Sequence record: OM634661.1
DNA: 64,000 nucleotides
Direction: 5' to 3' (one strand)
This document shows positions 35,003 through 51,014 of this stretch, piece by piece (the first letter of the stretch is position 1; each line of letters begins with the position of its first letter). Under the pieces are notes generated by a model, which was given only the letters and a program-made list of their open reading frames with translations, was not told where the DNA came from and made no database searches. The position numbers and the translations under genes are program-made.

Positions 35003-38000
35003 ATGGACAAAAACAATCTTGTACAAAGATATGGCGGTGTCTCAGGCGATATAGTCTGGGATAGCCGCTCTCCTTCTAATTTCTCGAACACAAATAGTGC
35101 AGAAAGAAATGAAGGAGCACAGACTGCTGCAAAAGCGCTTAATGAATTAGATTACAATTCAAGTGCATATAAAAACTCATTAGGTATCTGGAGTCAAGTG
35201 AATCCAGCTAACCCTTTCCAAAATAATGGACAACAAGCCATTCAGGGATTAATGAATATGAAGGAAGGTTCTGATGTCTTTGTTTATGATACAGAGATAC
35301 TAGGAACAGCACCAATGCATAGAAAAAGAAATAGTGTCGATTTCTACACTCCTACAGAAATTGCAATACAGCATACGAAGTTTATTAATGGAAAGTTGCA
35401 AACAGTAGAAAATAGCAACCGATCTCTTCTTATTCAACCTACAACAGATGTGTACAACAAATTAGATGATCTTATTAGGCAAGCAGCAAAAGGCAGATGG
35501 GTTGGTATGACAGATGACCAGCGCAGAACCCTATCGGATTTGACTCTGTATTCAGGTGATGCATCAGAGTTATTTGACGTACAAAATGTTCATGGACGAA
35601 AGATTGTTACTGTTAAAACACAGAACAGAAAAGTTCATCCTTTACAGGGAAGTGTTCTTTCATCTTCTAAAAATATTGCGAGAATGCAACAAGGACTAAA
35701 AAACTTAATGGAGTTTGGAACAGCACCTAAAGACATGGCATGGGAATTAAATAGATTTATGCAAGGTACAACAAATGCAATGTTTGCAGGTTACAACGTT
35801 CATAACTTTGATCAACCTATGATGCTTGATTATCTAAAGAATACTGTAGGTAAGTCATTAGGTAAAGACAGCGTAGCTCAAAGATCATTAGATAAACTCT
35901 ATACAGCTATGTCAGCAACACAAGTAGATGCATTCTCTGCTATTAAGACATTATACAAAGATCCTTTTAGTCGATTTGGCGCTAGAACAACACTTGAAAG
36001 AATGGATGAATTGATTAATGGAAGTAAAAAGAGAGATGGGTCTCGTATCGCTCACTTTGGTCTTTCTGATGCAAAGGTAACAGTAGATACCTTTAATAGT
36101 ATATTAGCAGATAATAATGTTTCAAAAATGATCTCTTCTGGAGGTAAAGCAAGAATCCCAGGATACGGAACATGGACTTCTAAGAATATTGAAGTAGGAG
36201 ATTTATTATTCGGTAAAGCAGGTCTTAATAGTCATGATTATGACGGTGTATACAAAAGAAGAGGCGGCGTATTAGAGCCAGCTTACAATATTAAAACAAA
36301 CAATATCTATAGAAATACAACATATGAAGTAAAGAACTTCTTTGATGGTGTTGAAATTGATGGGAAGAAAATGTTTGGGGTTCAATTATACAACCAAAAT
36401 GATGATCTGCATCATACTATTTTTAGAGATAATATGGGTGAACTTCAAAAAGCGATTCATGGATCTTTAGAGCCAGCTAACAACAAGACGGATGCTATGA
36501 GAAGAACAGCTTCAAGACTTCAAAACGAAGATAGAGCACTAAGAAGATGGAGAAAAATGTTCTCTACAGAATCTGGCGGCGGTATGGATTTAGCAACTAG
36601 ACTTTATAACGCACTTGATATTGAAAGAGATGTTCGTAAGATAGCTGCTCAAGAAGGATTAAAAGACGAGAAGCTAATCAAACAACAGATTGACCAAATG
36701 ATTTTAAAGAACAATGAATGGAATACAGATGAATTTGTTCGAGACTACCACACAATGAAGGGTCGATTAAAGCATGAAGAAAGCTATGTAAGAAGCTTTA
36801 TGAACAAAGTACAGTCTAGTGAAATTGGTGGAGATACACCTTCAGCCAAAAGAGCACAGAATCTTGCAATGGCAAACTTCGGAAAGCTTCTTGATCAAGA
36901 GTTTGGTGTGAATGAGTACAAGAGAAAGTTACCAGCTGGAAGCAGAGCCTTACCAATCAACATGAATGGTGAAACTCAGTACTTAAATATGAATGGTGTA
37001 GAAGGATTAAAGAGACAAATGTATGGATCTCTTTATAAAGGTCATGTATCAAAACCAAATCCAAGTATCGTTAAGCAGAGATACAAAGAGCTTCTTGGAG
37101 AATTAAAAACAACCAATGCAATTAGTGCAAAGAAATATGAAGAAGTACTAGGTGCTTTGGATCATATAAGAAGTGGAGATTCCCTAGACAACTTATTAAC
37201 AGAGCTTTCAAACGAAGTCATGAATGAAAGAGACAGGAACTCTAAGCTTGGTCTTTCTCATATACCAGCTGAAAATCCAACTGGTGTAAACAAAACAAGT
37301 GAAAGACACAGGAATGTGTCAAAAGCTCTGAAGTCTGGTGAAATGGAAAAAATCATGGGTAGAGCTATTAACTCTGTAGATGCTTACAATATGCAGTGGG
37401 ATGGCAAGACACCAGTTCGTTTCTTAGGAAAAGAAGTAGAAGAAATGATGGATATCCATGACAAAGCAATTGGTAATATACTAAGCGACTCTGGTATTAA
37501 TAAAGATGCTCGTATCGGATTTGAAAATGCCAAAAACTCTAGATCGTCTTTAACAAAATTAGCACAAGCATTTGTGAATAATGGAATGCATGTTCAGTTT
37601 AGATATAACGAAGTAAGTAAAGGTTTAGTTATGGCACTTGCTTCACAAAAAGTTTCTGAATCTGTATTAGATGGATCTCTAAATGATTTAATGAAGAATA
37701 ATAATGTAGCGACAGTAAACCTTCCTAGAATGAATGAAGATGGAACAATTACACTAGGATCTCAGAACAGAGTAGCAAGACTTACAGCTCAAAGAAGTAA
37801 AGATGGGAGCTATCAGGTTGTCACAGCATTTGATGAAGTTATTCAATCATTAATGAGAGCAGCTCCTTTTGCTAAAGATCAACTTGAAATGGCAAGTGCA
37901 ACAGGCAAGAAGAATGGAATGCTTCGTATTGATAGCACATTGAATAGAAGAGCACGACTTGCGATGCAGAATCTTTCCATGAATAACAAAAAGATGAACA

Positions 38001-41000
38001 ACTCAGATATGGAAGACATGTATAAAACAGGATCTAGATTAGCGAACTGGATGCGTGGAAGAACAATAGACATCTCTGCATTTGCAGAAGAATGGTATAC
38101 AAACTTCTATGAAACAGCTTCTGATAAAGCTAGAAGAGAAATGAGATTGTCATCTCCAGATCGAATTAAGGCAAATATGCAATCAGGTGATTTGTTTGTA
38201 AACTCTATGGGTGTCAATGCAAGACGTATTTTCCAGAGACAGGTAGACGGCTGGTTAAGTGAAAACTTTAATATCAACGTAGATATGCACTCTGTAAAAG
38301 ATACTCATGTATCAAACTATATTCGTGCCACAGCAGATACAAGGCAGTTAACACCATTTGGATTCTTTAACCCAATGGCTCGTGAGAACATTATGAAATC
38401 TGTTAACTATCATCACCTAGATGGCAGTACTGTTAGGCAAAACCTACTAGCACGTAACTTTAGTGAAGATCGTATTGATCGAATCTTAAACAGAGGGGTT
38501 GTCACAGACAAAGCTTTAGAAGTAATGGGCGATGAAGTAGGATATCTGAATCTAAGAGCAGCATACATGGATGATAAAAGCATAGCTGAAAGAGCAACTT
38601 CTTTAAAATCTACATATGAAGAAAGAGCAAAGAACCCGAATCTTTCTGAAAAAGAAAGAGCTAAGTATGCTAGACTAGCGAAATCCATTGGTACGGCAGA
38701 AACGATCTCTACATTTGATGGTATGTTTATCATGGCTGATGACGTTGCTTCGGCATTTGAAATCAAGCGTGAAAAGAATATTAGAATATCACCAGGAGCA
38801 GAACTAAACAGTGCCATTGTAGATAAAATGAAGAAACATGTTGAATCTATGGGTGGTACATTTGATCTATCTCAAGATATGTCTATGGATGTAAAACTAA
38901 TTGGCAATGGAGTAGCAAGAGGAAAGAATGGCTCTATCACGATTAGTGACATTGCAAAAGATGATACATTCAGAAAACCAGTTGATGTATATGATAAATG
39001 GAGTAATGATGTCCGAATTAAGAAATGGGATGCAAAAGAAAATGTACTTGTATTAGAAGACACTGTGAAAACAGGTAACTCTACAAAGTTTGTTTCTGAT
39101 GCAGGACATCGTGTAACAAGTACAATTCTTCCAAGAGAAATTGTTGAAGCACTTGCTGGCGGTCAAGCAGATACAATCCTACCTGCTTTTGAAACAAGTA
39201 AGAGCCAGTGGGGAACTGAAATTAACAAGTATGTTAGCTTAGCTGTAGATGAGGCGAAGAGACAAGTTGAGTCTGGGAAATTAACAGTAGGTAAACTGAC
39301 TAAGGAAGAAACTACTCAGACTGTACTAGAACAAATTAAAGGCATGATGAGTAAGAATATTTCTAGGGAACTAGAAAAAGAAGCACTTGTTAAAGAAGGA
39401 CGAATTGTTCTATCTGATACATTTGGTATTGCTGGCGACAATGAATTAAGTATCGGATCAAGGGTCGATGCACAAGGAAGAAGACTTGGCGGATTGAATG
39501 GATTCTTATCTGATGTAGACAAATTGCTAGGAACAAGTTTCCAAGGTGGCAAAACCATTTTTGGTCAGGTAGGAATGGGACTACAGGATGTATACAATTG
39601 GGAGGACAGAATAGGTCTTTCTAATGAGAATTCAGCTGGACTTGTTAAGTACGGAAGAAAAGAAGCTGATATGATTTCCTCAAGAGCAAGAGCAGTATTA
39701 GGAGAAGAGAGCGCAGTAAGTACATGGCTTAATTCTCATATTAGAAATGCGGCTACAGCTCAAAAGAAAGATATTGAGAGAATCGGAAGCGGTCTTGTTA
39801 GAACCATTATAGAAGGAAGAGATGTTACTCCAAGTAGTGGAGATGTTGTTATTAGAACAACAGGAACAGCATTTGAAGCAGATAATATTGGTAGAGTGAC
39901 AGATCATGGAGTCAGAGAAATATCCATGAATGCAATTGATAACTTACCAGAAGTTACTCAAAAGAATCAAAAGTTCACTGTTCAAGATTACAACAGAACA
40001 ATACTGAACTTTGGTCGTACAGAAGGAACTTTTGGAGATGGATTGTCTTTTTCTGATTCTATTAAACAGAACAAAGGAACTGCTCTACTTGAAATGCCTG
40101 ATGAAACATTCTCAAGAAAATATCTAAGATTAATAGACTTTGGAGATCCTGCTAATAGAGCCATTGGTACGACTCCAGTAATGGAAGAGCTTGAGAAGGG
40201 CGCTCAGCAGATCTGGAGAGGCATTAAAGAGTATCAAGCTGTTGGGTCTAATGATAGCTTAACGCCTCAAGAAAGGGAGTCTAGGGTTAATAAGATTAGA
40301 GAGAACGTTGAAAGATCTATCTCAGACTATGAGGGTAAAGTAGCTCATATGACAAGTTCATCAAGGGACGGAAGTCTTGAGAAAAAACTTGGTTCTGCAA
40401 AGATGGATATGTCAGGTCGTTTTAGAATCCAAGGTGTAAGTCCATTTGCAAACTATGAAAAATCAGGAGATGGAACTTGGAATCAAGTTGGTAAATATCA
40501 AGAAGGCCATGTCTATATGAGTAGGCAAGCAGTTGGTGAAATGATTGATGGAGCAGAGAAGAATATTGCTTCTCAAATCATGGGATTGACCAATGAAGAA
40601 ATTAGTGGTCATGGACGCAATTTGAAGTCGAAAGTTCTTGATTATGTAAGAGATAATGGTTTATATGGATTTGTAAACCGTTACCCAACAATTAACCAAT
40701 CAACAATACAAGCAATGAAAGTATCTATTGATGAGTCAATGTCTTCAAAAGACAGAGGCGCAAGGTTAACTGTTGGAACAGCAGCAAGACTTAAAGCCGA
40801 TTATGACGGTGACTTCTTATCTACAGTATTAGCTCATTATAGTACAGATAATGCTAAAGCAATTCATGAAGACTTAGCGAAATTGCAACATGAAGAGCAT
40901 AGAGCAGGTCTACAAAGCGCACAAGGTGTTATGGATGACCTAGTATCAGATATTGATGTAAAAGCTAAACAGATGAACCTGACTGTTGGAGAGTTGATGA

Positions 41001-42307
41001 AGAGTCATGATGAAAGACACATTGATCTAAGAAATCAAATGATTGGTGCTAGAACCACAAGAATGGATGCTTTAGAATCAGCAGAGGCTCGTCTTGGTAA
41101 AGAATTCATTGGCTTCGTAGACAATACACGTTTTAAAGTATTGACACTGGCTCAAGCAACATATGAAACACTTCAAGAAACAACTGGTCGAAATGGTTCT
41201 CCACTTATGACAGGTCAAGAAGCAGCTAGAAGAAGAGAAATAGTTGAAGAATTCGGAAGAACATTCTCTCAGGATTTAATCTCTTCTAAGAAGTTTAGTG
41301 CAGAAACAGTAAAAGAATCTGTATTAAAAGTAAATCCTAGCTTATCTGGAATGGATCTTGAAACAGAAATCGAAAAGCAGATGTCACAAAGATATCAAGT
41401 CGTTGCATCTATGAACGAATCTATTTTAAATCCAACAGAGACAAACTTGCAGAAGTTCAGACAGGGAAATGAAATACTTGGTCTCTTTGATACTTCTACA
41501 CAGCAAGGTGCAGACAAACTAGACAACATGCTTTCTGAGATTCAATATATAAACAAATTAAATAGTAGTGCAGGAACAAGCACATCTGGTCCACTCAACA
41601 ATGCATTCTTAAAAGTAGGTCTTTCAGAAGGAAGTTCATTTGATCATCTTAGAAAGACATTGAGTGGTCAAGGCAACATGGTAATACCAACAGATGCTGT
41701 TAAAAATATTATGAGTATTGCTGATCCAGAAACAGCGGGTCAATTAGAAGAAGGTATTGGAGTCTACAAAAAGTCTCTTATTACAAACCTAGAAAGAATG
41801 AGCGGGAACCAAGATACAATCATGGATGCAATCGGTAAATCTCATTCTCTTGAAAACGAACAACTTCTAAGTAATGCAATGGCAGCAGATGAAGCTGGAA
41901 CAAAATTAAGAAGTGTTGTTGGAAAAGTAATGCCTGGTGGAATACATGGCGGTGGAGTGATGGCTGGTGCAGCAACATTTATGGGGCTATGGGCAACAAG
42001 TGCTTTAATGAGAAGTGGGCCAACACCTGAGTCTATGAAAGAATCAGCTCCTGCACCACCACCAGTTGAAAACCTTGCACAAAGCCAACCAACAGCACGA
42101 GTTGCTGAAAATGGCGAACATGTGAATATTCGAATATCTGCAAAAGATGCAAAGAATATGTCACAAGAAGACATAGCAGCTCTTGTTCATCAAGAAGTAA
42201 GTGGTATGTCAGGTATACCTATGAATATCAATCTAAATACAAACGACAACTTACAGAGAATCGACAAGAACTGGCTTCAACAAAAATTCTCAGATGCTAT
42301 GGGATGA
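35003..42307 (+). CDS. Candidate single-chain two-barrel virion RNA polymerase with N-terminal DEDDh exonuclease
   Basis: Exonuclease motifs D96-T-E98, D270, H351-x4-D356. Beta-like FDG (1238-1240) and K1362-x5-G-H-R1370. Beta'-like DMSGR (1802-1806), NRYPT (1892-1896) and ADYDGD (1932-1937). Hydrophobic helix near the C-terminus. Confidence 0.8.
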   Translation: MDKNNLVQRYGGVSGDIVWDSRSPSNFSNTNSAERNEGAQTAAKALNELDYNSSAYKNSLGIWSQVNPANPFQNNGQQAIQGLMNMKEGSDVFVYDTEILGTAPMHRKRNSVDFYTPTEIAIQHTKFINGKLQTVENSNRSLLIQPTTDVYNKLDDLIRQAAKGRWVGMTDDQRRTLSDLTLYSGDASELFDVQNVHGRKIVTVKTQNRKVHPLQGSVLSSSKNIARMQQGLKNLMEFGTAPKDMAWELNRFMQGTTNAMFAGYNVHNFDQPMMLDYLKNTVGKSLGKDSVAQRSLDKLYTAMSATQVDAFSAIKTLYKDPFSRFGARTTLERMDELINGSKKRDGSRIAHFGLSDAKVTVDTFNSILADNNVSKMISSGGKARIPGYGTWTSKNIEVGDLLFGKAGLNSHDYDGVYKRRGGVLEPAYNIKTNNIYRNTTYEVKNFFDGVEIDGKKMFGVQLYNQNDDLHHTIFRDNMGELQKAIHGSLEPANNKTDAMRRTASRLQNEDRALRRWRKMFSTESGGGMDLATRLYNALDIERDVRKIAAQEGLKDEKLIKQQIDQMILKNNEWNTDEFVRDYHTMKGRLKHEESYVRSFMNKVQSSEIGGDTPSAKRAQNLAMANFGKLLDQEFGVNEYKRKLPAGSRALPINMNGETQYLNMNGVEGLKRQMYGSLYKGHVSKPNPSIVKQRYKELLGELKTTNAISAKKYEEVLGALDHIRSGDSLDNLLTELSNEVMNERDRNSKLGLSHIPAENPTGVNKTSERHRNVSKALKSGEMEKIMGRAINSVDAYNMQWDGKTPVRFLGKEVEEMMDIHDKAIGNILSDSGINKDARIGFENAKNSRSSLTKLAQAFVNNGMHVQFRYNEVSKGLVMALASQKVSESVLDGSLNDLMKNNNVATVNLPRMNEDGTITLGSQNRVARLTAQRSKDGSYQVVTAFDEVIQSLMRAAPFAKDQLEMASATGKKNGMLRIDSTLNRRARLAMQNLSMNNKKMNNSDMEDMYKTGSRLANWMRGRTIDISAFAEEWYTNFYETASDKARREMRLSSPDRIKANMQSGDLFVNSMGVNARRIFQRQVDGWLSENFNINVDMHSVKDTHVSNYIRATADTRQLTPFGFFNPMARENIMKSVNYHHLDGSTVRQNLLARNFSEDRIDRILNRGVVTDKALEVMGDEVGYLNLRAAYMDDKSIAERATSLKSTYEERAKNPNLSEKERAKYARLAKSIGTAETISTFDGMFIMADDVASAFEIKREKNIRISPGAELNSAIVDKMKKHVESMGGTFDLSQDMSMDVKLIGNGVARGKNGSITISDIAKDDTFRKPVDVYDKWSNDVRIKKWDAKENVLVLEDTVKTGNSTKFVSDAGHRVTSTILPREIVEALAGGQADTILPAFETSKSQWGTEINKYVSLAVDEAKRQVESGKLTVGKLTKEETTQTVLEQIKGMMSKNISRELEKEALVKEGRIVLSDTFGIAGDNELSIGSRVDAQGRRLGGLNGFLSDVDKLLGTSFQGGKTIFGQVGMGLQDVYNWEDRIGLSNENSAGLVKYGRKEADMISSRARAVLGEESAVSTWLNSHIRNAATAQKKDIERIGSGLVRTIIEGRDVTPSSGDVVIRTTGTAFEADNIGRVTDHGVREISMNAIDNLPEVTQKNQKFTVQDYNRTILNFGRTEGTFGDGLSFSDSIKQNKGTALLEMPDETFSRKYLRLIDFGDPANRAIGTTPVMEELEKGAQQIWRGIKEYQAVGSNDSLTPQERESRVNKIRENVERSISDYEGKVAHMTSSSRDGSLEKKLGSAKMDMSGRFRIQGVSPFANYEKSGDGTWNQVGKYQEGHVYMSRQAVGEMIDGAEKNIASQIMGLTNEEISGHGRNLKSKVLDYVRDNGLYGFVNRYPTINQSTIQAMKVSIDESMSSKDRGARLTVGTAARLKADYDGDFLSTVLAHYSTDNAKAIHEDLAKLQHEEHRAGLQSAQGVMDDLVSDIDVKAKQMNLTVGELMKSHDERHIDLRNQMIGARTTRMDALESAEARLGKEFIGFVDNTRFKVLTLAQATYETLQETTGRNGSPLMTGQEAARRREIVEEFGRTFSQDLISSKKFSAETVKESVLKVNPSLSGMDLETEIEKQMSQRYQVVASMNESILNPTETNLQKFRQGNEILGLFDTSTQQGADKLDNMLSEIQYINKLNSSAGTSTSGPLNNAFLKVGLSEGSSFDHLRKTLSGQGNMVIPTDAVKNIMSIADPETAGQLEEGIGVYKKSLITNLERMSGNQDTIMDAIGKSHSLENEQLLSNAMAADEAGTKLRSVVGKVMPGGIHGGGVMAGAATFMGLWATSALMRSGPTPESMKESAPAPPPVENLAQSQPTARVAENGEHVNIRISAKDAKNMSQEDIAALVHQEVSGMSGIPMNINLNTNDNLQRIDKNWLQQKFSDAMG

Positions 42308-42334: not shown

Positions 42335-45300
42335 ATGCAAACTATTCAAACTCAGATTAGATCAATTAGAAAAGAATCAAGTGAAGCGGTCTGGAGAATT
42401 TCTTATCTAGACCCTTCGCTCCAGTCTTATGTTGAAGTTTCTATGGGAGAAGGCGGAGATGTTAGAATAGGACCTCGATTATCAGAGGTCTTATCTGATA
42501 TCGAATTTCAAGCGAAGAGTTCTTATCCTATCAATGCAAATTGGATGGAAGATGATCCAGACAATTTATTCTCCGTAAAAAGCTTTAATGATATCGCTGT
42601 TTCTATTGAGATGGAAGTATCAACATATAAGGCTTATAGAAACAAGCAACGTATTCAATTAAAAAGAGAAATGTCTATAGAAGAAAGTGTTCCTTATTCA
42701 GAAAATGAATTCGGAGAAGAAGAAGATGCGATTGAAACACTTTACATACCAGAAGAAAAAGATACGAATATCAAACAAAACAACTTAAGAGATTCTAGTT
42801 ACTTCCTTGTTGGTAAGGTTGGTCGTGTTATTGATGGAGATACAATTGATCTTATTGTTGAAAGAAAAGGAAGTAAGGTTAAGGGTTCTGAATTTGAAAA
42901 AGGAAAGACAGTTAGAATCAGATTCTATGCAACACAAACACCTGAAACAAACAAAGCAGGGGATTATGACGAAAAGACAAACGCTGCTTATGCAAAGAAA
43001 TATAAGATTACAACAAAAGATGCTTATAAGATTGCAGACGAGGCCAAATCATTTGTTCAAAAACAATTGGGTGGTGCTGGTCTTATTGTCGTAGATTTAG
43101 ATACTGATAAAGATGGTAGGCTTAAAACAACATATGGTCGATATGTCGGTATGGTCTATAAGACAAGAGAAACAAATGCTGAGAATGTCTTTAGAAATCA
43201 AGGGAGCATTGCGAATAATATCAACAAAACAATTTTGATAACAGAATCAAAGAAAGTTCCAGGCACTCCATTAGGAACAATTAATAGTGAATTTGTATCA
43301 AAAGAATTTAGCCGTTTTGATGGAATGGTATGGGAAGCAGAACTTGGTCTCAACGCAACAAAGACAAAGCATGTTGGATCTGTAGGAAGCCTGATTGATC
43401 AAAAAGATCCTGATGGTGATAGTAAAAGATTAAATATGAAGACAGTGAATATTAAGTACGAAGAGGCTCCTAGTAACTTAATTGACTACATAGAACCTAA
43501 TGATGATAGAGCTGAAAGTAGAGCAAGTGATGCTTTATCAGAATACAGAGTGAGAATTGGTGACGTTGATCTAGTTATTCCTCCTCTATCTATTAACTTA
43601 AACAGAGCTTCTAATTTGCAAAAAATTAAAACGTTGCGAAGCAAATCTTCTATTATTACAAAAGTAGGTAGCAGTACAGAACACATTACGCTTCAATTAT
43701 ATTTTCATGATCTTGATTCTATTAACGGTAAAAGAATCAAAAGACATGCAAAGCTAAAAGACCAATACTATTACATGGATGGATTAAGACCATTGATTGC
43801 ACAGTTTAAAAAAGCTCCATTCCTTCCTATTGATAATGAATATATAAATGAAACGCTAGGTATTCACAACGTAGCTCTTGTCAATTTAACAGTATCAACT
43901 GTACCAGGATTTCCTCATTCATTGTCAGCGACTCTTGTTCTTGCAAAATTTGAACATGAAGCTTTCATGCCACAAGTTGAATTCTTAGGAAATGCTATCA
44001 ATTATCCTTTACTAAGATGGTATTACCAAGAAGCAATGGTTGATAACGGAAGTCCATACCGAACATACTTGTCTCCAATTGAGGGAGAACTAACAAACGA
44101 CTTTACGTTCTCTATTGCTGATGAAGATCAGCTTGCAGAAAGAAAAATGGCAATACAAAAGATTCGAATGATGGAAAATCCATTAACATATAAAGAAAAG
44201 ATTGATAATAAGGAAACAGAAATTGGTCGCTTAATTTCTGATGGTAAAAAGATAGAAGTGGCCTTGAAGCAATGGGAGCGATATCTAAATGTTAAATCAA
44301 AAGGATTACTTCCTAAAGTAGATGAGATGGGATATATTGAGCCAAATGATACATTAAGTCCTAAATCCCCAAACCCTAAAAGCCGACAAGCTTGGAAAGA
44401 GATCTATGAGAGCGAAGCTATTGCTTCTAAATCTAATGCAAGATTCTATCCAGTAGAGAGTCAAGAATTCCAAACAACAATGATGCCTGAACAATATACA
44501 AGAGAAGAATATAGAAGCTATTTTGGAGATCATAAAGCTGAAGGGTTTATCATGATCGGTCTTGATGGGGCGGCAAATAAAGAAGCTCTTCCAAGTTTCT
44601 ATCAGGATGTTGGTGGTAATAAAGACACGACAAATTCACCTTTATACTATATTCCAATGAGTCAGCCATCTTATGCACAACAAATCTTATCAAGAGCAAA
44701 GAATGCAGAGTTAAGCGCAAAAAATTATATTGATGAGTACACAGAGACTCAAAAGATCATTAGAGCAACAGAAGGAGAACTTGATCTTGTTGATTACCCG
44801 ATTGATGGATTGATTCTAACAAATATTGATGTCATGTATGAGAACTCTTTCAGTACAATGCATATACAAATGAATGATGCACCTACTAATCAATATCTTG
44901 GATCACAAGATCCTTATGTACAAGTAAAGTTTGAAGCAACTCAAGATGCTGTTAGACAACTAAAGGATTTATTGCAAACAGTAGATCGCTACTCTAAAGA
45001 ATACAGGCTTGGAATTACATCTGGATTTATGGGATTAGATAATCAATTAACAAATCTATTTGGAGTTAGAACTGTTCTTGCAGAAAATGTTGGTATTAAT
45101 ACTGTACCAGGATTCCCTGGCAGATTCCAAGTAGAGATGACACTTTGTGGATTCAATAAGACTCAGAAAAGAACAGAAGAACTTGAAGGTATATCACCTA
45201 TCTATGGTAATTCTTCAAAGGCAGATAGACATGCAAAGAATTACAATGCAGCAGTAGATAATGCCATTGTTGAAATGAAGATGAGAGACCTTGAAGTTTA

Positions 45301-48300
45301 TCCAGATTTAGAACTTCCAACTTATGATGAGTTAAATGCGGCACTTCCTTACATTTCATCTGGTGCTAAAAAGATTCCTAATTACTTAGGAAACAAGTAT
45401 GTTGACCCTGACTTCTACATCGCAACGCCGAATACATTAAGAGAAATGGTCAAAGAGATGAGAGAGAAAGAACATAAGATGCAGCTTAAAGACATGATGG
45501 GTGTACAAATGTACACAAGTAATCAGATGTCAGGACCATTAGATGGAGATGCTTCGATGTGGAGTCTCTTAAATAATGTAGATGAATCAGTGCCAGGTAT
45601 TAAAGCGGGATTCAATTGGGGCGGCGAAACAAGTTCGTCTGGTGGATCTTCTAAGGATGGCGGTGTATTCAAAAGCAAAGAGGTTCAAAAGTATGTAGAG
45701 GATAAGAAGAAGTTGAAAGAACCACCTACTTTGCAAGAATGGTCTAAATGGGGATATGGAACAACACCTAGTCAGTATCTTGCATGGAAAGAGAATCCTC
45801 ATCCAGAAGAATGGCAGGTATACAACCTAATATATCAAATGGTTGATACTAGATGGTTAAAAGCTGGTCTAGTCTTTAATGATAAAAAGAAAAGTACAAA
45901 GGCAATTGAAAAGGTCACATACTCTAAGAGAGATGATCTTTATAAGGTGAATTGGAATTACTTAGCTGATCAAGATCCAAGTCAGATTAAGAATGGTAAG
46001 AAAGTTAAGATCGGAAAGTTATCCAAGCAGGATTTTAGATCTACTAATAGCAAAGTAACAAGAGAGCGTATTGCAAACTTGATTAAAGCCATCTTCCATG
46101 TGAGAAGTGGATGGAAGCAATTCTACAGTAATGGATCTCCAATTTTCAGAGGTGGAGAGAACTCTGCTGGTATCGGAGGTGTTCCTCTAGGAGCAGAAGC
46201 TGAAGGTGTTTCAGAAGCTAAAAGACTTCTATGGGATTGGAAATATAATATTACATTTGCAGTAGATCATCTATTTAAGATGTATAAACAAGCAAATAAC
46301 AGTAAGGATCTCAATAAGAAATCTAGGCCTTGGGATTACATGATTCAAGGATATGCAACAGGAAACACAGATGGAGAATTGAAAAATTCATTTGTTGATG
46401 CAGTATATGCAAAATTTGATAGACAGTACAATGATGTAAAGGCGAAATATGCAACACCATCAAGCCCAATGAACTTGAAAGCATTCCAATATAAAAACGG
46501 CTTAAGTGATCATGACATTGCTGTTATCAAGGGAGATAAGGGAGCTATCATTGATGAGCTTCTATCCATTGGATATAGAGAAGTGAAAAGCACAACTCTT
46601 ATTATCTTTAAAGAGTATTATTCTAAAGCAGAAACAAAAAAGATTTTGGAAAAGAAAAGTGCAACAAAGCTGAAGAAGATACTAGATGATTACAGGCTAG
46701 ATAAGTATGGAAGCGGAGAAAGTTACAAGGAACCAGCCAATTCATATTTTGATCCAAACTTTAGTAATATTTCACAAGCTAAAGGGGCAAATGCTGATGA
46801 AGATGAGTATTACAGATATCAGAAATATATCGAAGCTGGAGACTACATTGACAATGCAGATGGTAATAGACTCGTAAATACAGATGATCCTCAAGAATTA
46901 TTTAGAGAGATGTTTGTAGATATGCTTGATTATGATCATAGATTTAGATTGCTTCGTGCATTCCCTACTTTCCAAATGTTTATTATCGAAGAAGGAAGAT
47001 GGATGGCAAACTATAGACTGTGGGATAACCTTTATGGATTTAATGCAATACAATCTATAGATGTACATAAAAATAGAAAGATTGCCGCTGACACAGCGAT
47101 TATCACTATGACAAATGTATATAACAATCTAAGAGCACGATCTATGGATACAAGCTACAGCGAGTGGGATTACAGCTTCTGGGATAACCTTGTCTTAGGA
47201 AATCCAAACGAAAAATTATTAGAAGCTAGAAAAGAATTACTGAGTAACATGATGCTAGAGCCAGGTGCTAGAATCCATTTAAGAATGGGATATGGATCAA
47301 GCGTACCAAATTTACCTGTTGTCTTTAACGGAACAATAACAGAGATGGACACAGAAGAGCTTGTAACAGTTGTTGCTCAAGGTGACGGTATTGAATTAAC
47401 AAACGTGATCTCTGGAGATCCTGATGATAAGAACAGAAGCTGGATTGGAACTATTGAAGAACCAAGAGACTTGATCTGTAACTTAATGACAAGTAAAGGT
47501 AACTGGTTCAAAGATGTAATCAACTGGACAAGTGGAAATACATTCTTCAAAGACAATCCATTAGGTGTACAACACTTTGGAATGCCTGGTAAAACACCAC
47601 CAGCAAACTTTGTACCATTCAATACTGATTATGGGGAAGCTGCTCAGAACATTTATTCTTCAAATGGAATACCTACATTTAGCCAATGGACTTATGAAAA
47701 TGGGGAGTCAATTCCATTCTCATTTGAAGGAGGAAACCCTTGGAGATGGATACAACCAGGTGATGAAGATAACATACTTCTTAGCTTCTATCTGAATACA
47801 ATCTGGGATATTACACAAACGATTGCATATTGTTCACCTGATTACGTTGCAGCCGTTCATCCATTTGAAACAAGAAGTACATTGTTCTTTGGTAAACCAT
47901 ACTGGAAGATGGCACATAGATATAGTAGCTCATACGAGTATGATTCTGGATCAAAACAATGGCTCAGAACTTTAAACACAGAGCATAGAAAACCATATAT
48001 GCAATTCCATTACTTAGATGGATATATGGACATTATCTCTAACAGAATCAAAGCAACTTCAGAAAATATGTATACAAACGTCATTGTGAACTATGACGGA
48101 AAACAAACAGAAACAATTTATGCTGATTACGACATTCATTTTGCAAAACAAAAGACAACTGTCATTGATGCGAAGATTGTTTCAAGAGCAAAAGGGATTG
48201 ACTTCTGGACATCTGAGAAACAGGCATTGTATTACGGAGCAAGTGCTCTTAGAGATTACATGAAAGATATGTATCAAGGAGAGCTAATTGTACTAGGAAC

Positions 48301-49315
48301 ACCAACATTGAAGCCTCATGACATGTGCTTCATGTCTGATGAGATGTCTGATATGAATGGAAACATTCAAGTAAAAGCAGTCACTCACTCTTTCTCATTA
48401 GAAACAGGTTTTGTTTCTTCTGTACAGCCAGATGCAGTAGTTGTTACAGATGATATGGCAATCTTATCTCAATCATCTTGGTTGCATTCATTTGGCACTG
48501 GATTACTAGGATCTATCGTTGGTACAAGATACGCATCTAGATCTTTAAGAAAAATTGTATCAAGTGCAATTGCTCAAAAATTAATCAAGACAGGTGGAAA
48601 GGGATCTAAAAAAGCGATAGAGAAATCATTACTAAAAGGACTGTCGTCAATTCCTGGAAACGATAAAGATGTGAAAGCCTTTAAGACGGCAATGGCAGAG
48701 TATATAAGGGCAGGAGAAGGAACAAGTGCTAAGTCACAAGCATTAGACAAAGCAACAAAAGCTCAATCGAGACTTGAAAGTAAAGTAGCTGAGTGGAAGC
48801 AAAGCGGGTCATTTGACAAGAAGAAGCTTGGTAAGAAAGGTATTAGTCAAGCAAAGATTGAGGTAAAACGAGCCACAGCAGTATCAAAACAAATCCTCAA
48901 TGCAACTAAGGGTGGTAAGAAAGCTATGAAGACAATCAGCCTTATTGGAAGAGGAGTGGCTGCATCAAACCCTATCGGCTTACTTGTCACAGCTGTTGCT
49001 ACATGGGCTGCTGAAACAATCGCTGAAAAATATAGAAGAAAGAAAGCATCTATGCAAGCATGTTTGATTCTTCCTTTGAAATATCAAGGTAGAGAATTCA
49101 CAGCTGGCATCAATGGACACAAAGGACTTGTTGTTGGAGACAACCCAGGCCGTATAGATAACTTCTTATCAGGAGCAGGATTTGATGGTAAGAATGATGG
49201 CGGACTAGATGAATGGGTAATGGACTTGTGGAATTGGGCAACAGATGCAGAAGATAAGAAATATAGCGTAAGTGAAGAAGACTTAATGTCTGGAGATTAT
49301 AAATTAAATCAATAA
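42335..49315 (+). CDS. Giant baseplate-hub protein with N-terminal thermonuclease (SNase) domain and a degenerate lysozyme-like domain
   Basis: RVIDGDTI...RIRFYATQTPE...YGRYVGMVY; hub-like LEPGARIHLRMGYG...FNGTITE and VKAVTHSFS; hydrophobic C-terminal helices. Confidence 0.72.
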   Translation: MQTIQTQIRSIRKESSEAVWRISYLDPSLQSYVEVSMGEGGDVRIGPRLSEVLSDIEFQAKSSYPINANWMEDDPDNLFSVKSFNDIAVSIEMEVSTYKAYRNKQRIQLKREMSIEESVPYSENEFGEEEDAIETLYIPEEKDTNIKQNNLRDSSYFLVGKVGRVIDGDTIDLIVERKGSKVKGSEFEKGKTVRIRFYATQTPETNKAGDYDEKTNAAYAKKYKITTKDAYKIADEAKSFVQKQLGGAGLIVVDLDTDKDGRLKTTYGRYVGMVYKTRETNAENVFRNQGSIANNINKTILITESKKVPGTPLGTINSEFVSKEFSRFDGMVWEAELGLNATKTKHVGSVGSLIDQKDPDGDSKRLNMKTVNIKYEEAPSNLIDYIEPNDDRAESRASDALSEYRVRIGDVDLVIPPLSINLNRASNLQKIKTLRSKSSIITKVGSSTEHITLQLYFHDLDSINGKRIKRHAKLKDQYYYMDGLRPLIAQFKKAPFLPIDNEYINETLGIHNVALVNLTVSTVPGFPHSLSATLVLAKFEHEAFMPQVEFLGNAINYPLLRWYYQEAMVDNGSPYRTYLSPIEGELTNDFTFSIADEDQLAERKMAIQKIRMMENPLTYKEKIDNKETEIGRLISDGKKIEVALKQWERYLNVKSKGLLPKVDEMGYIEPNDTLSPKSPNPKSRQAWKEIYESEAIASKSNARFYPVESQEFQTTMMPEQYTREEYRSYFGDHKAEGFIMIGLDGAANKEALPSFYQDVGGNKDTTNSPLYYIPMSQPSYAQQILSRAKNAELSAKNYIDEYTETQKIIRATEGELDLVDYPIDGLILTNIDVMYENSFSTMHIQMNDAPTNQYLGSQDPYVQVKFEATQDAVRQLKDLLQTVDRYSKEYRLGITSGFMGLDNQLTNLFGVRTVLAENVGINTVPGFPGRFQVEMTLCGFNKTQKRTEELEGISPIYGNSSKADRHAKNYNAAVDNAIVEMKMRDLEVYPDLELPTYDELNAALPYISSGAKKIPNYLGNKYVDPDFYIATPNTLREMVKEMREKEHKMQLKDMMGVQMYTSNQMSGPLDGDASMWSLLNNVDESVPGIKAGFNWGGETSSSGGSSKDGGVFKSKEVQKYVEDKKKLKEPPTLQEWSKWGYGTTPSQYLAWKENPHPEEWQVYNLIYQMVDTRWLKAGLVFNDKKKSTKAIEKVTYSKRDDLYKVNWNYLADQDPSQIKNGKKVKIGKLSKQDFRSTNSKVTRERIANLIKAIFHVRSGWKQFYSNGSPIFRGGENSAGIGGVPLGAEAEGVSEAKRLLWDWKYNITFAVDHLFKMYKQANNSKDLNKKSRPWDYMIQGYATGNTDGELKNSFVDAVYAKFDRQYNDVKAKYATPSSPMNLKAFQYKNGLSDHDIAVIKGDKGAIIDELLSIGYREVKSTTLIIFKEYYSKAETKKILEKKSATKLKKILDDYRLDKYGSGESYKEPANSYFDPNFSNISQAKGANADEDEYYRYQKYIEAGDYIDNADGNRLVNTDDPQELFREMFVDMLDYDHRFRLLRAFPTFQMFIIEEGRWMANYRLWDNLYGFNAIQSIDVHKNRKIAADTAIITMTNVYNNLRARSMDTSYSEWDYSFWDNLVLGNPNEKLLEARKELLSNMMLEPGARIHLRMGYGSSVPNLPVVFNGTITEMDTEELVTVVAQGDGIELTNVISGDPDDKNRSWIGTIEEPRDLICNLMTSKGNWFKDVINWTSGNTFFKDNPLGVQHFGMPGKTPPANFVPFNTDYGEAAQNIYSSNGIPTFSQWTYENGESIPFSFEGGNPWRWIQPGDEDNILLSFYLNTIWDITQTIAYCSPDYVAAVHPFETRSTLFFGKPYWKMAHRYSSSYEYDSGSKQWLRTLNTEHRKPYMQFHYLDGYMDIISNRIKATSENMYTNVIVNYDGKQTETIYADYDIHFAKQKTTVIDAKIVSRAKGIDFWTSEKQALYYGASALRDYMKDMYQGELIVLGTPTLKPHDMCFMSDEMSDMNGNIQVKAVTHSFSLETGFVSSVQPDAVVVTDDMAILSQSSWLHSFGTGLLGSIVGTRYASRSLRKIVSSAIAQKLIKTGGKGSKKAIEKSLLKGLSSIPGNDKDVKAFKTAMAEYIRAGEGTSAKSQALDKATKAQSRLESKVAEWKQSGSFDKKKLGKKGISQAKIEVKRATAVSKQILNATKGGKKAMKTISLIGRGVAASNPIGLLVTAVATWAAETIAEKYRRKKASMQACLILPLKYQGREFTAGINGHKGLVVGDNPGRIDNFLSGAGFDGKNDGGLDEWVMDLWNWATDAEDKKYSVSEEDLMSGDYKLNQ

Positions 49316-49328
49316 GGGATGTGGTTGT

Positions 49329-50459
49329 ATGGCTCGAAATGATAAGCAGGAAGCTTGGGAAAAGGGATATATAGATAATGTAGGGCAAATGAAACAAGCC
49401 TATGACTATCGACAAGACTTCCTTAAAGATTTTAGTCTTAACGGTGAGAAAAAGGAAGATGATCAAATTGGTGATGATTCTGGTTCTGGTGGCGGCGGTA
49501 GCGTCACCATTGGAACTAAATATGATGACGTTATTAACGAAGCTGGAAAGAAGTACGGTATCAATCCGTACTTCATAGCTTCAGTTATAAAACAAGAAAG
49601 TAACTTTAATCCTAGTGCAGGGTCTCATGCTGGTGCAAGAGGATTAATGCAATTAATGCCAGCCACTGCAAAAGCGTTAGGAGTATCTAATCCATCAGAT
49701 CCTAGACAGAATGTAATGGGAGGAACTAAATACCTAAAGCAAATGTTGCAAGCTCAAGGATGGAATCCTGTACTGGCATTAGCTGCGTATAATGCTGGGC
49801 CAGGTAACGTTCGTAAGTATGGAGGAGTTCCGCCATTTAAAGAGACTCAGCATTATGTTAAAGTTATTCCTCAAAACTTCAAGAATTATACAGGGGAAAC
49901 ATTAACAAGTAAGAATGTAAAATGGTCAGGAGACATGGCTAGTTCTGGAGGTAAGACCAGCTTTAGTGGATCTGGAAGTCAGATCACAATCAAAGGTGGA
50001 AGGATCTATATCCCTACAGGCATAGGTAGAAGTCAGTATGCAGCTAAGAGGAGATCAGAAGGAAGCTCAACAAATTGGGCAGCATGGAAGAAACTAGACT
50101 CTAAAAAGTTTAATCATAACGGACCTATGAAATCTGTGAATAAGTATGCACCTGATGCACATGCGGCTTTTAATTTACTATATGAAAAGCTTGGTAAAAA
50201 AACACTTCTAATCAACTCTGGTTTTAGAAATGGCGATCCAGCAATGCATGGAGCAGGATGTGCATTTGATATAGGATGTAGAGGAAAAAAAGATGCTTTG
50301 TTTGTAGCTGATACAGCTTGGTCTCTAGGATTTAGAGGAATAGGTGTTGGAGGTAATCTAGGAGGCGGAGCAGGATTTGTACACGTAGACATTGGTCCAG
50401 ATGGCGGAGGATGGAGTTATGGATATGGGAAGTATAGAGGCCCTAATAGCATGAGGTAG
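49329..50459 (+). CDS. Virion-associated lysin: lytic transglycosylase plus M15-type peptidase
   Basis: IKQESNF, GLMQLMP and AAYNAG (SLT domain); SGFR...MHGAGCAFDI...FVHVDIG (M15 zinc peptidase). Confidence 0.9.
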   Translation: MARNDKQEAWEKGYIDNVGQMKQAYDYRQDFLKDFSLNGEKKEDDQIGDDSGSGGGGSVTIGTKYDDVINEAGKKYGINPYFIASVIKQESNFNPSAGSHAGARGLMQLMPATAKALGVSNPSDPRQNVMGGTKYLKQMLQAQGWNPVLALAAYNAGPGNVRKYGGVPPFKETQHYVKVIPQNFKNYTGETLTSKNVKWSGDMASSGGKTSFSGSGSQITIKGGRIYIPTGIGRSQYAAKRRSEGSSTNWAAWKKLDSKKFNHNGPMKSVNKYAPDAHAAFNLLYEKLGKKTLLINSGFRNGDPAMHGAGCAFDIGCRGKKDALFVADTAWSLGFRGIGVGGNLGGGAGFVHVDIGPDGGGWSYGYGKYRGPNSMR

Positions 50460-50470
50460 GAGGAAGTTGT

Positions 50471-50656
50471 GTGCCAATTGGAAACATATTAAAAGAAAAG
50501 ATAGCAAATACAAATGCATTTGAGAAAAAACACATAGAGTTCTTAAAAGAAATTAAAGAATTTAAGAATAATAAAAAACTCCAAGATGAATATAAACGTG
50601 TACAGGTCATTCTAGAAAAAACAGTGAGTAAGGTAGGGGGTTTTCATTATGAATAA
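50471..50656 (+). CDS. Small basic hypothetical protein
   Basis: GGAGG 7 nt before GTG; overlaps the next start. Confidence 0.55.
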   Translation: MPIGNILKEKIANTNAFEKKHIEFLKEIKEFKNNKKLQDEYKRVQVILEKTVSKVGGFHYE

Positions 50657-51014
50657 TAATAATCCAATTACAAAAAAGATATATGATCAAGTTGTAAGAC
50701 CTGCGCTTGCTAGTCGATTAAGTCCAGTTAAAGGTTATATTACAGCCGTATATTATGAAAGACAAACAGTAGATGTTGTATGGAAAGATCCAAATGCTGG
50801 GTCAGAGAGAAAATCTTCTGACCTTGCACTTCCTCCAGAAGGAGATGGAGTCTTCAGCCAAGGATTAGAAGTTGGAGACTATGCTGTTGTAGCATTCAGG
50901 CATGGGAGTATAGAAAGTCCTTACATATCAAGTATTGAAAGAAGATATAGAGATGAAAGTAAATTTAGTTCTAAATTTGGTAGTGGCATTCCTAAAGGAA
51001 TAGGTTATCTTTAA
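50649..51014 (+). CDS. Baseplate spike OB-fold (gpV/gp5 N-terminal-like) protein
   Basis: VKGYITAVYYERQTVDVVW...LEVGDYAVVAF...PYI. Confidence 0.6.
   Translation: MNNNNPITKKIYDQVVRPALASRLSPVKGYITAVYYERQTVDVVWKDPNAGSERKSSDLALPPEGDGVFSQGLEVGDYAVVAFRHGSIESPYISSIERRYRDESKFSSKFGSGIPKGIGYL

Follow-up and report, generated by a model that had tools for sequence, protein, structure and literature searches.

We predict that gp035, the giant baseplate hub protein of Bacillus phage vB_BauM_KLEB27-3 (GenBank OM634661.1, 216,671 bp), carries a phosphodiesterase on its N-terminal arm that cuts extracellular or surface-bound nucleic acid, and we place the probability of this whole proposal at about 55%. The window analyzed is the first 64 kb (64,000 nucleotides) of this jumbo phage of Bacillus australimaris, and positions in it are those of the record. 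A stretch of gp035 close to the N-terminus has the fold of staphylococcal nuclease (SNase) and is homologous to it, its catalytic residues are conserved among divergent relatives, the same protein contains a gp27/VgrG-type hub fold, and the stretch behaves as a swappable cassette among related hubs. From these features we predict catalytic activity, the use of a metal, a nucleic acid substrate and a location on the virion.

An AlphaFold2 model of amino acids (aa) 150-340 of gp035 has a predicted local distance difference test score (pLDDT) of 92.1 and a predicted template-modelling score (pTM) of 0.89. All of the top matches to this model in Foldseek were to S. aureus nuclease (probability 1.00, target-normalised TM ~0.75), and VIA-align aligned 128/137 residues with SNase at a root-mean-square deviation of 2.4 Å (Z 13.8, 23% identity). 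The first-pass annotation of this DNA, made from the letters alone, had proposed a thermonuclease domain at 42800-43270. The predicted fold and the location bear this out, but the limits were drawn too tightly (see Table 1 for the wider extent). The motifs are where that annotation had put them, with VIDGDT at aa 165-170 (hence D167 and D169), RIRFYATQTPE at aa 194-204 and YGRY at aa 267-270.

Family-level sequence evidence is moderate for gp035 alone, and becomes strong once the relatives are included. The domain matches PHROG 452 'endonuclease' (E 2e-8) and the NCBIfam model for the Ca-activated nuclease EcnA (E 2e-6). Pfam SNase (PF00565, gathering cut-off 21 bits) scores 25.9 bits on the orthologue from phage WH1 (gp094), and is found at E<=0.001 in 6 of 20 relatives. 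Phmmer searches of PDB sequences with either the domain or the whole of gp035 gave no match; only profile searches reached SNase there, and weakly. Homologues likewise escaped a word-indexed search in which the 212-aa domain alone was the query, and an exhaustive profile search was needed. Its first ~27 matches were giant proteins of 2300-2950 aa in which the domain lies at aa ~130-350; small proteins came next, and 8 of the 10 small standalone proteins scanned were above the Pfam SNase cut-off. Comparison by hhalign of the hub-domain profile with the standalone SNases gave a probability of 99.8% (E 1.7e-29, 145 columns); the standalone proteins had themselves been collected with the hub profile, though the majority score above the Pfam cut-off independently. 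Database names of the relatives include 'thermonuclease family protein' (Bacillus subtilis, B. mycoides), 'nuclease' (Priestia megaterium, Cytobacillus) and 'endonuclease YncB (thermonuclease family)'. That aa ~150-340 of gp035 form a SNase fold and are a SNase homologue is close to certain.

The nearest standalone relatives have hydrophobic, signal-peptide-like N-terminal leaders, and have in common with the gp035 domain a helical insert (~25 aa, after E204 in gp035) and a C-terminal F-(D/E)-x3-W motif. The leaders, together with the common motif and insert, point to an origin of the gp035 domain from secreted nucleases.

Catalysis by SNase involves Ca2+, Arg35, Arg87 and a water molecule activated by Glu43 (PMC8436206). 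In the HMMER alignment to nucleases of the PDB, 'RF..(D/Q)TPET' falls on SNase FRLLLVDTPET and 'YGRY' on KYGRGLAY. Residues D167, D169, R196, T202, E204, Y267 and R269 of gp035 are the equivalents of SNase D19, D21, R35, T41, E43, Y85 and R87, and Q201 takes the D40 position. The Ca2+ ligands in SNase structures are Asp21, Asp40 and the main chain of Thr41, and the reaction typical of the family is the Ca2+-dependent cutting of DNA and RNA to 3'-phosphates. Thus, the Ca-binding and catalytic set claimed in the first-pass annotation is intact in its DGDT loop and in its Arg, Glu and Arg residues, but one Ca ligand, Asp40, is replaced by Gln201 ('ATQTPE' versus 'LVDTPE').

The conservation pattern among relatives follows the active site. 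Across a 27-row alignment with 23-41% identity to the gp035 domain, no columns are invariant other than D167, G168, D169, T170, R196, E204 and R269, and these correspond precisely to SNase D19, G20, D21, T22, R35, E43 and R87. One sequence, P0028, was kept out of this alignment; its motif reads DGNT, and a Cys replaces the R35 equivalent. Residues equivalent to D19, D21, R35, E43 and R87 are all kept in 98 of the 120 other SNase-like domains of giant hubs. The Asp40 column of these 98 intact domains holds Asp in 54, Asn in 21, Gln in 18, Glu in three, and Tyr and Leu in one each; a tree of the hub region with 26 tips requires at least 10 changes in it. Asn also occupies the column in two small standalone relatives, P0034 (above the Pfam SNase cut-off) and P0051. 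Given an oxygen donor in 96/98 domains and this many changes, Gln201 is, as far as the alignments tell, a recurrent and apparently tolerated variant. A column that is variable yet nearly always an oxygen donor is consistent with a metal still being ligated, though the affinity may differ.

In the domain, 36 synonymous and 5 non-synonymous differences separate KLEB27-3 from a relative of 97% identity found in a public run. The ratio of non-synonymous to synonymous substitution rates (dN/dS) against this relative is 0.031 for the SNase domain and 0.021 for the entire gp035, with a maximum of 0.155 in the N-terminal domain (aa 1-~149). We consider the gp035 SNase domain to be probably catalytically active.

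A census of 137 giant hub homologues found an intact SNase domain in 98, a degenerate one in 22 and none in 17 (four of the latter are clearly partial proteins). The expectation at first pass that hubs usually carry wall hydrolases rather than nucleases describes phages in general but not this lineage, in which ~70% of the giant hubs have an intact SNase domain. The SNase stretch (aa ~150-340) is cleanly absent from P0069, P0071, P0075, P0080 and P0083, which keep the N-terminal domain and the core and are 65-69% identical to gp035 in the hub region. A FastTree tree of the hub region requires at least 19 changes between intact and not intact, and at least 11 between presence and absence. Clean absence in close relatives and repeated changes of state imply that the domain is not an assembly-essential part; judged by its distribution, it is an accessory and seemingly dispensable cassette.

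Wall-directed modules are found in the same arm. In P0025 and P0027 the SNase domain is immediately preceded by a Glucosaminidase domain (aa 14-140), and in P0006 LysM follows it directly. Other relatives have Hydrolase_2, VgrG3-like_C, Amidase_2, NlpC/P60 or M23 domains elsewhere in the hub protein. A different arrangement was identified in P0152, a hub homologue from a public run that is 46% identical in the hub region. Its arm carries a DNA/RNA non-specific endonuclease domain of the His-Me type (PF13930, E 4.4e-22, aa 169-297), followed by a SNase-like domain (aa ~354-567) that lacks DGDT and the catalytic residues. This looks like the replacement of one nuclease by an unrelated one. Because the unrelated nuclease adjoins a decayed SNase domain, this one case argues that nucleic-acid cleavage, rather than the fold, is the selected trait.

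The hub fold, with its two tube-like domains, was identified in the AlphaFold2 model of aa 1515-2045 (pLDDT 71, pTM 0.74). At E values of 9e-14 to 1e-9, Foldseek matched this model to hubs of extracellular contractile injection systems, Mu gp44 (1wru), T4 gp27 (1k28_D), pyocin R2, diffocin and the VgrG of type VI secretion systems (VgrG1). By tblastn, the hub region matches ORF147 of phage 0305phi8-36, a 'baseplate hub protein', and the gp035 gene lies between a large tail protein (gp034) and spike and wedge genes, as is the case for gp27-type hubs. Thus, the name baseplate hub was well chosen in the earlier reading. The nuclease-like domain was placed at the N-terminus of the hub, and it does belong to the same protein, but it lies outside the hub fold, as a cassette ~1,200 residues upstream. 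BLASTP shows that the core common to gp035, 0305phi8-36 gp147 and CDS0032 of Moorella phage MTATph1 begins at aa ~390-406 ('VRIGDV'). By this comparison, everything upstream is a variable N-terminal arm, which in gp035 is made up of a domain at aa 1-~149 and then the SNase domain.

Based on its fold, the hub domain (aa ~1515-2045) would trimerise and anchor gp035 under the tail tube of a contractile tail. The long N-terminal arms would hold the nuclease, like the glycosidases of relatives, outside the baseplate core; we place them there because of the fusion partners and because three folded arms of ~1,500 aa would be too large for the lumen of the tube. In the Ca2+-rich environment of the wall, the nuclease would most likely cut extracellular or surface-bound DNA or RNA, be it extracellular DNA (eDNA) or RNA, present in the matrix, the capsule or debris of the wall. 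Cleavage would occur as the phage adsorbs and penetrates the wall, with peptidoglycan being left to gp036 and the spike. Because glucosaminidase, LysM and SLT domains occupy the same arm in relatives, we favor the cell surface rather than the cytoplasm as the site of action.

Several points weigh against this proposal. The location on the virion is predicted from the fusion partners only, and the GenBank entry for gp035 carries no label of detection in virions. If a nuclease without specificity were next to the channel by which DNA leaves, the genome of the phage itself could be at risk, so the enzyme would have to be kept off the channel or gated. As regards activity, Pfam SNase scores gp035 itself at 16.9 bits (E 0.009), below the cut-off, and Gln201 stands in place of a Ca ligand. 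In view of SNase D40 mutants, Gln at this position probably lowers Ca2+ binding or rate. Catalytic residues have been lost from 22 of the 120 other hub domains, which keep a fold-level profile match, so the fold can persist without catalysis. Our literature searches found no functional test of any SNase-bearing hub.

The points about Gln201, the Pfam score and the 22 decayed domains would also be expected if the SNase fold of gp035 were catalytically weak or dead, and served as a binding or spacer module that grips nucleic acid or a phosphate-rich polymer, or as mere decoration. The SN domains of Tudor-SN are of this kind, and non-catalytic SN domains of Tudor-SN are the next-best structural matches in VIA-align (Z 11.8). 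We regard a weak or dead module as unlikely, although it is the alternative that survives best. The catalytic and Ca-site residues are the only invariant columns in divergent relatives, Gln or Asn recurs at the Asp40 column in otherwise intact sites (Asn in the two standalone relatives as well), and P0152 sets a second, unrelated nuclease beside its decayed SNase domain, which argues that cleavage and not binding is selected.

Alternatively, the arm could be carried through the envelope on contraction and degrade host DNA or RNA in the cytoplasm, as do evolved VgrG effectors. The hub is indeed VgrG/gp27-like, and a hydrophobic segment near its C-terminus might enter the membrane. However, three folded arms of this size are too big for the tail tube, SNase-type enzymes need Ca2+, which is scarce in the cytoplasm, and the same arm in relatives holds peptidoglycan hydrolases and LysM, which act outside the membrane. 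Once in the cytoplasm, a non-specific enzyme would not spare the phage DNA as it enters, and the cassette is dispensable in close relatives. An injected effector is thus improbable. Least probable of all is a non-nucleic phosphodiester polymer (wall or lipoteichoic acid) as the substrate of a wall-clearing depolymerase in the glycosidase slot of relatives: the cassette alternates with or adjoins SLT-like and glucosaminidase domains, and its extra insert and C-terminal region are unlike S. aureus nuclease, but we know of no SNase-fold teichoicase, literature searches turned up none, and nucleic acid is the substrate suggested by P0152, whose alternative enzyme belongs to the classical DNA/RNA non-specific endonucleases.

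Table 1. Features of gp035 and of two genes downstream of it (positions in OM634661.1).
Feature	Position	Strand	Basis
gp035, giant baseplate hub protein	42335..49315	+	single open reading frame, 2326 aa; UNY39804.1 'putative baseplate protein'
gp035 N-terminal domain, aa 1-~149	42335..42780	+	conserved W20, G46, R48, L49
SNase-fold domain (putative nuclease), aa ~153-340	42791..43354	+	profile matches, AlphaFold2 model, structure matches
Duplicated core domain, copy 1, aa ~405-575	43550..44060	+	'VRIGDV ... TVPGFP ... INYP'
Duplicated core domain, copy 2, aa ~830-940	44825..45160	+	'NTVPGFPGRF'
gp27 / Mu gp44 / VgrG-type central hub domain, aa 1515-2045	46877..48469	+	AlphaFold2 model, Foldseek, tblastn
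C-terminal hydrophobic segment, aa ~2201-2230, and motif PLxYxGRxFTAGINGHxG, aa ~2247-2265	48935..49180	+	hydropathy scan, conservation
gp036, SLT lytic transglycosylase, own gene directly past gp035	49329..50459	+	Pfam SLT E 1.4e-30
gp038, P2 gpV-like spike, separate protein	50649..51014	+	BLASTP E 8e-8 to 0305phi8-36 gp148

The gp035 open reading frame is 100% identical to the record over the positions given in Table 1. Orthologues occur in phages WH1 (gp094, annotated 'virion structural protein') and Edson, and the hub part has 580 homologues at E<=1e-10. Some hub homologues named 'nuclease' or 'thermonuclease family protein' (P0059-P0061, P0109, P0115, P0121, P0124 and P0126) are on contigs of ~190-540 kb that come from assembled isolates of Priestia, Bacillus and Cytobacillus. 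Many of these contigs are of jumbo-phage size, which suggests that phages of the lineage were carried along with, or persist in, the sequenced cultures.

A counterpart of the N-terminal domain is retained even in relatives that lack the SNase cassette, and an N-terminal domain of unidentified kind was likewise remarked on previously (Hardies, Thomas & Serwer, 2007; PMC2147016). The two copies of the core domain align with each other in hhalign (probability 96.4%, E 1e-9), and both terminate in a 'TVPGFP...TL..F' motif. There is a weak Pfam Dit_like match in the copy-1 counterpart of 0305phi8-36 gp147, and a weak DUF6046 match at copy 2 in orthologues. Two tube- or Dit-like domains per chain could form a pseudo-hexameric ring from a trimer. 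The C-terminal motif is conserved in A4/A5, 0305phi8-36 and Moorella phage MTATph1, and together with the hydrophobic segment, which resembles a membrane span, it may help the hub to insert into the membrane or form a channel.

Upstream of gp035 is gp034 (2434 aa, 35003-42307), which occupies the slot annotated 'hypothetical tape measure protein' in 0305phi8-36 and has a weak Pfam RNA_pol_Rpb1_2 match (E 0.015, aa 1877-1944). Downstream are the genes for gp036 (SLT), gp038 (spike), gp040 (annotated as a wedge subunit) and gp041, which has a Baseplate_J domain. The spike match in 0305phi8-36, gp148, is annotated 'P2 gpV-like protein', and the gene order there is as in KLEB27-3. Wall-degrading modules shift between fused and free-standing forms in this lineage, as SLT is encoded by the separate gene gp036 here, and a SLT-like domain (weak Pfam match) is at the N-terminus of the hub in 0305phi8-36. 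We considered whether the SNase fold could be the structural oligonucleotide/oligosaccharide-binding (OB) fold of a spike N-terminus (cf. T4 gp5 and P2 gpV). This was rejected, as the spike is the separate protein gp038, and the complete absence of the domain from close relatives also rules it out.

Intragenomic transfer of the SNase domain has been proposed (Hardies, Thomas & Serwer, 2007; PMC2147016). A search for a standalone SNase donor gene elsewhere in the KLEB27-3 genome gave two weak candidates, neither of which is a SNase. One looks like a nuclease of the Cas4/PD-(D/E)XK type, judged by eye from its sequence, and the other is unrelated. The former is a 289-aa open reading frame (L009 1213-2082, minus strand; ~105145-106014 of the phage record) with a C-terminal Cys cluster, CRFCNFRDTC, and by eye it resembles the Cas4/RecB-type PD-(D/E)XK nucleases.

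To our knowledge, almost all virion-associated enzymes known so far degrade glycans or peptidoglycan. As eDNA is a major biofilm component in Bacillus, a hub nuclease active on the particle would help to clear the matrix by attacking eDNA. Natural controls exist within the family, since the domain is intact, decayed or missing in the hubs of close relatives, and one hub has a different nuclease. More broadly, and with distinctly less confidence than for gp035 itself, hub-borne virion nucleases may be a distinct and widespread class of phage 'depolymerase' in jumbo phages of Bacillaceae. Such enzymes would be active at the tail tip and clear extracellular DNA or RNA from the matrix or cell surface so that the long tail reaches the wall. 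Their recruitment would have occurred on at least two occasions, from the unrelated SNase and His-Me folds, with repeated loss where they are not required. A fitting annotation for gp035 is 'baseplate hub protein with N-terminal thermonuclease domain'.

Literature searches on KLEB27-3, WH1, thermonuclease with baseplate, or EcnA found nothing relevant, and PMC2147016 alone bears on the finding; a broad comparison of jumbo phages mentions no SNase or thermonuclease domains. In PMC2147016 (published in Virology Journal), 0305phi8-36 gp147 was assigned as a homologue of gp27/gpD, and a SNase domain was noted on the gp147 homologue of BtI1, a phage-like element of B. thuringiensis israelensis, with a utility described as 'still obscure' (Hardies, Thomas & Serwer, 2007; PMC2147016). 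This remark is nearly 20 years old and is now directly testable. Thus, the architecture of gp035 has been known since 2007 and is common in the lineage, although unusual for phages in general. New here are the models of the folds, a census of active sites, the finding that the Asp40 column is labile, the clean presence or absence of the cassette among close relatives, and the alternative His-Me nuclease.

The gp035 domain is like S. aureus nuclease (PF00565) in its OB-type fold, the DGDT Ca loop and the equivalents of Arg35, Glu43 and Tyr85-Gly86-Arg87. It differs in being only ~20% identical, in having Gln201 for Asp40 and the ~25-residue insert past Glu43, and in its C-terminal end, which has the F-D-x3-W motif. 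Moreover, S. aureus nuclease is a small secreted enzyme, whereas the gp035 domain is embedded in a 2326-aa protein predicted to be part of the virion. The BtI1 hub homologue belongs to the same giant gp27-type hub lineage as gp035, but the 2007 account noted its domain without active-site analysis, fold model or census, and KLEB27-3 is a different phage, of B. australimaris.

With 0305phi8-36 gp147, gp035 shares the duplicated core, the gp27-like hub domain and the C-terminal motif, and the two phages share a gene order of large virion protein, hub, gpV-like spike and gpJ-like wedge. Unlike gp035, gp147 has a SLT-like N-terminal cassette and C-terminal NlpC/P60 and M23 peptidases, and no SNase domain. 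Its N-terminal domain was assigned as a transglycosylase (Hardies, Thomas & Serwer, 2007; PMC2147016), and we find the SLT-like match at aa 34-138 (Pfam E 0.017, 15.1 bits) to be below the 21.3-bit cut-off. T4 gp27-gp5 and the evolved VgrG proteins have in common with gp035 the gp27/VgrG hub fold and the principle of an enzyme attached to the central hub or spike complex. In T4, however, the lysozyme is on the separate spike protein gp5, and in evolved VgrG proteins the effectors are C-terminal, whereas in KLEB27-3 the hub protein itself bears the putative nuclease, on its long N-terminal arm, and a separate protein, gp038, forms the spike.

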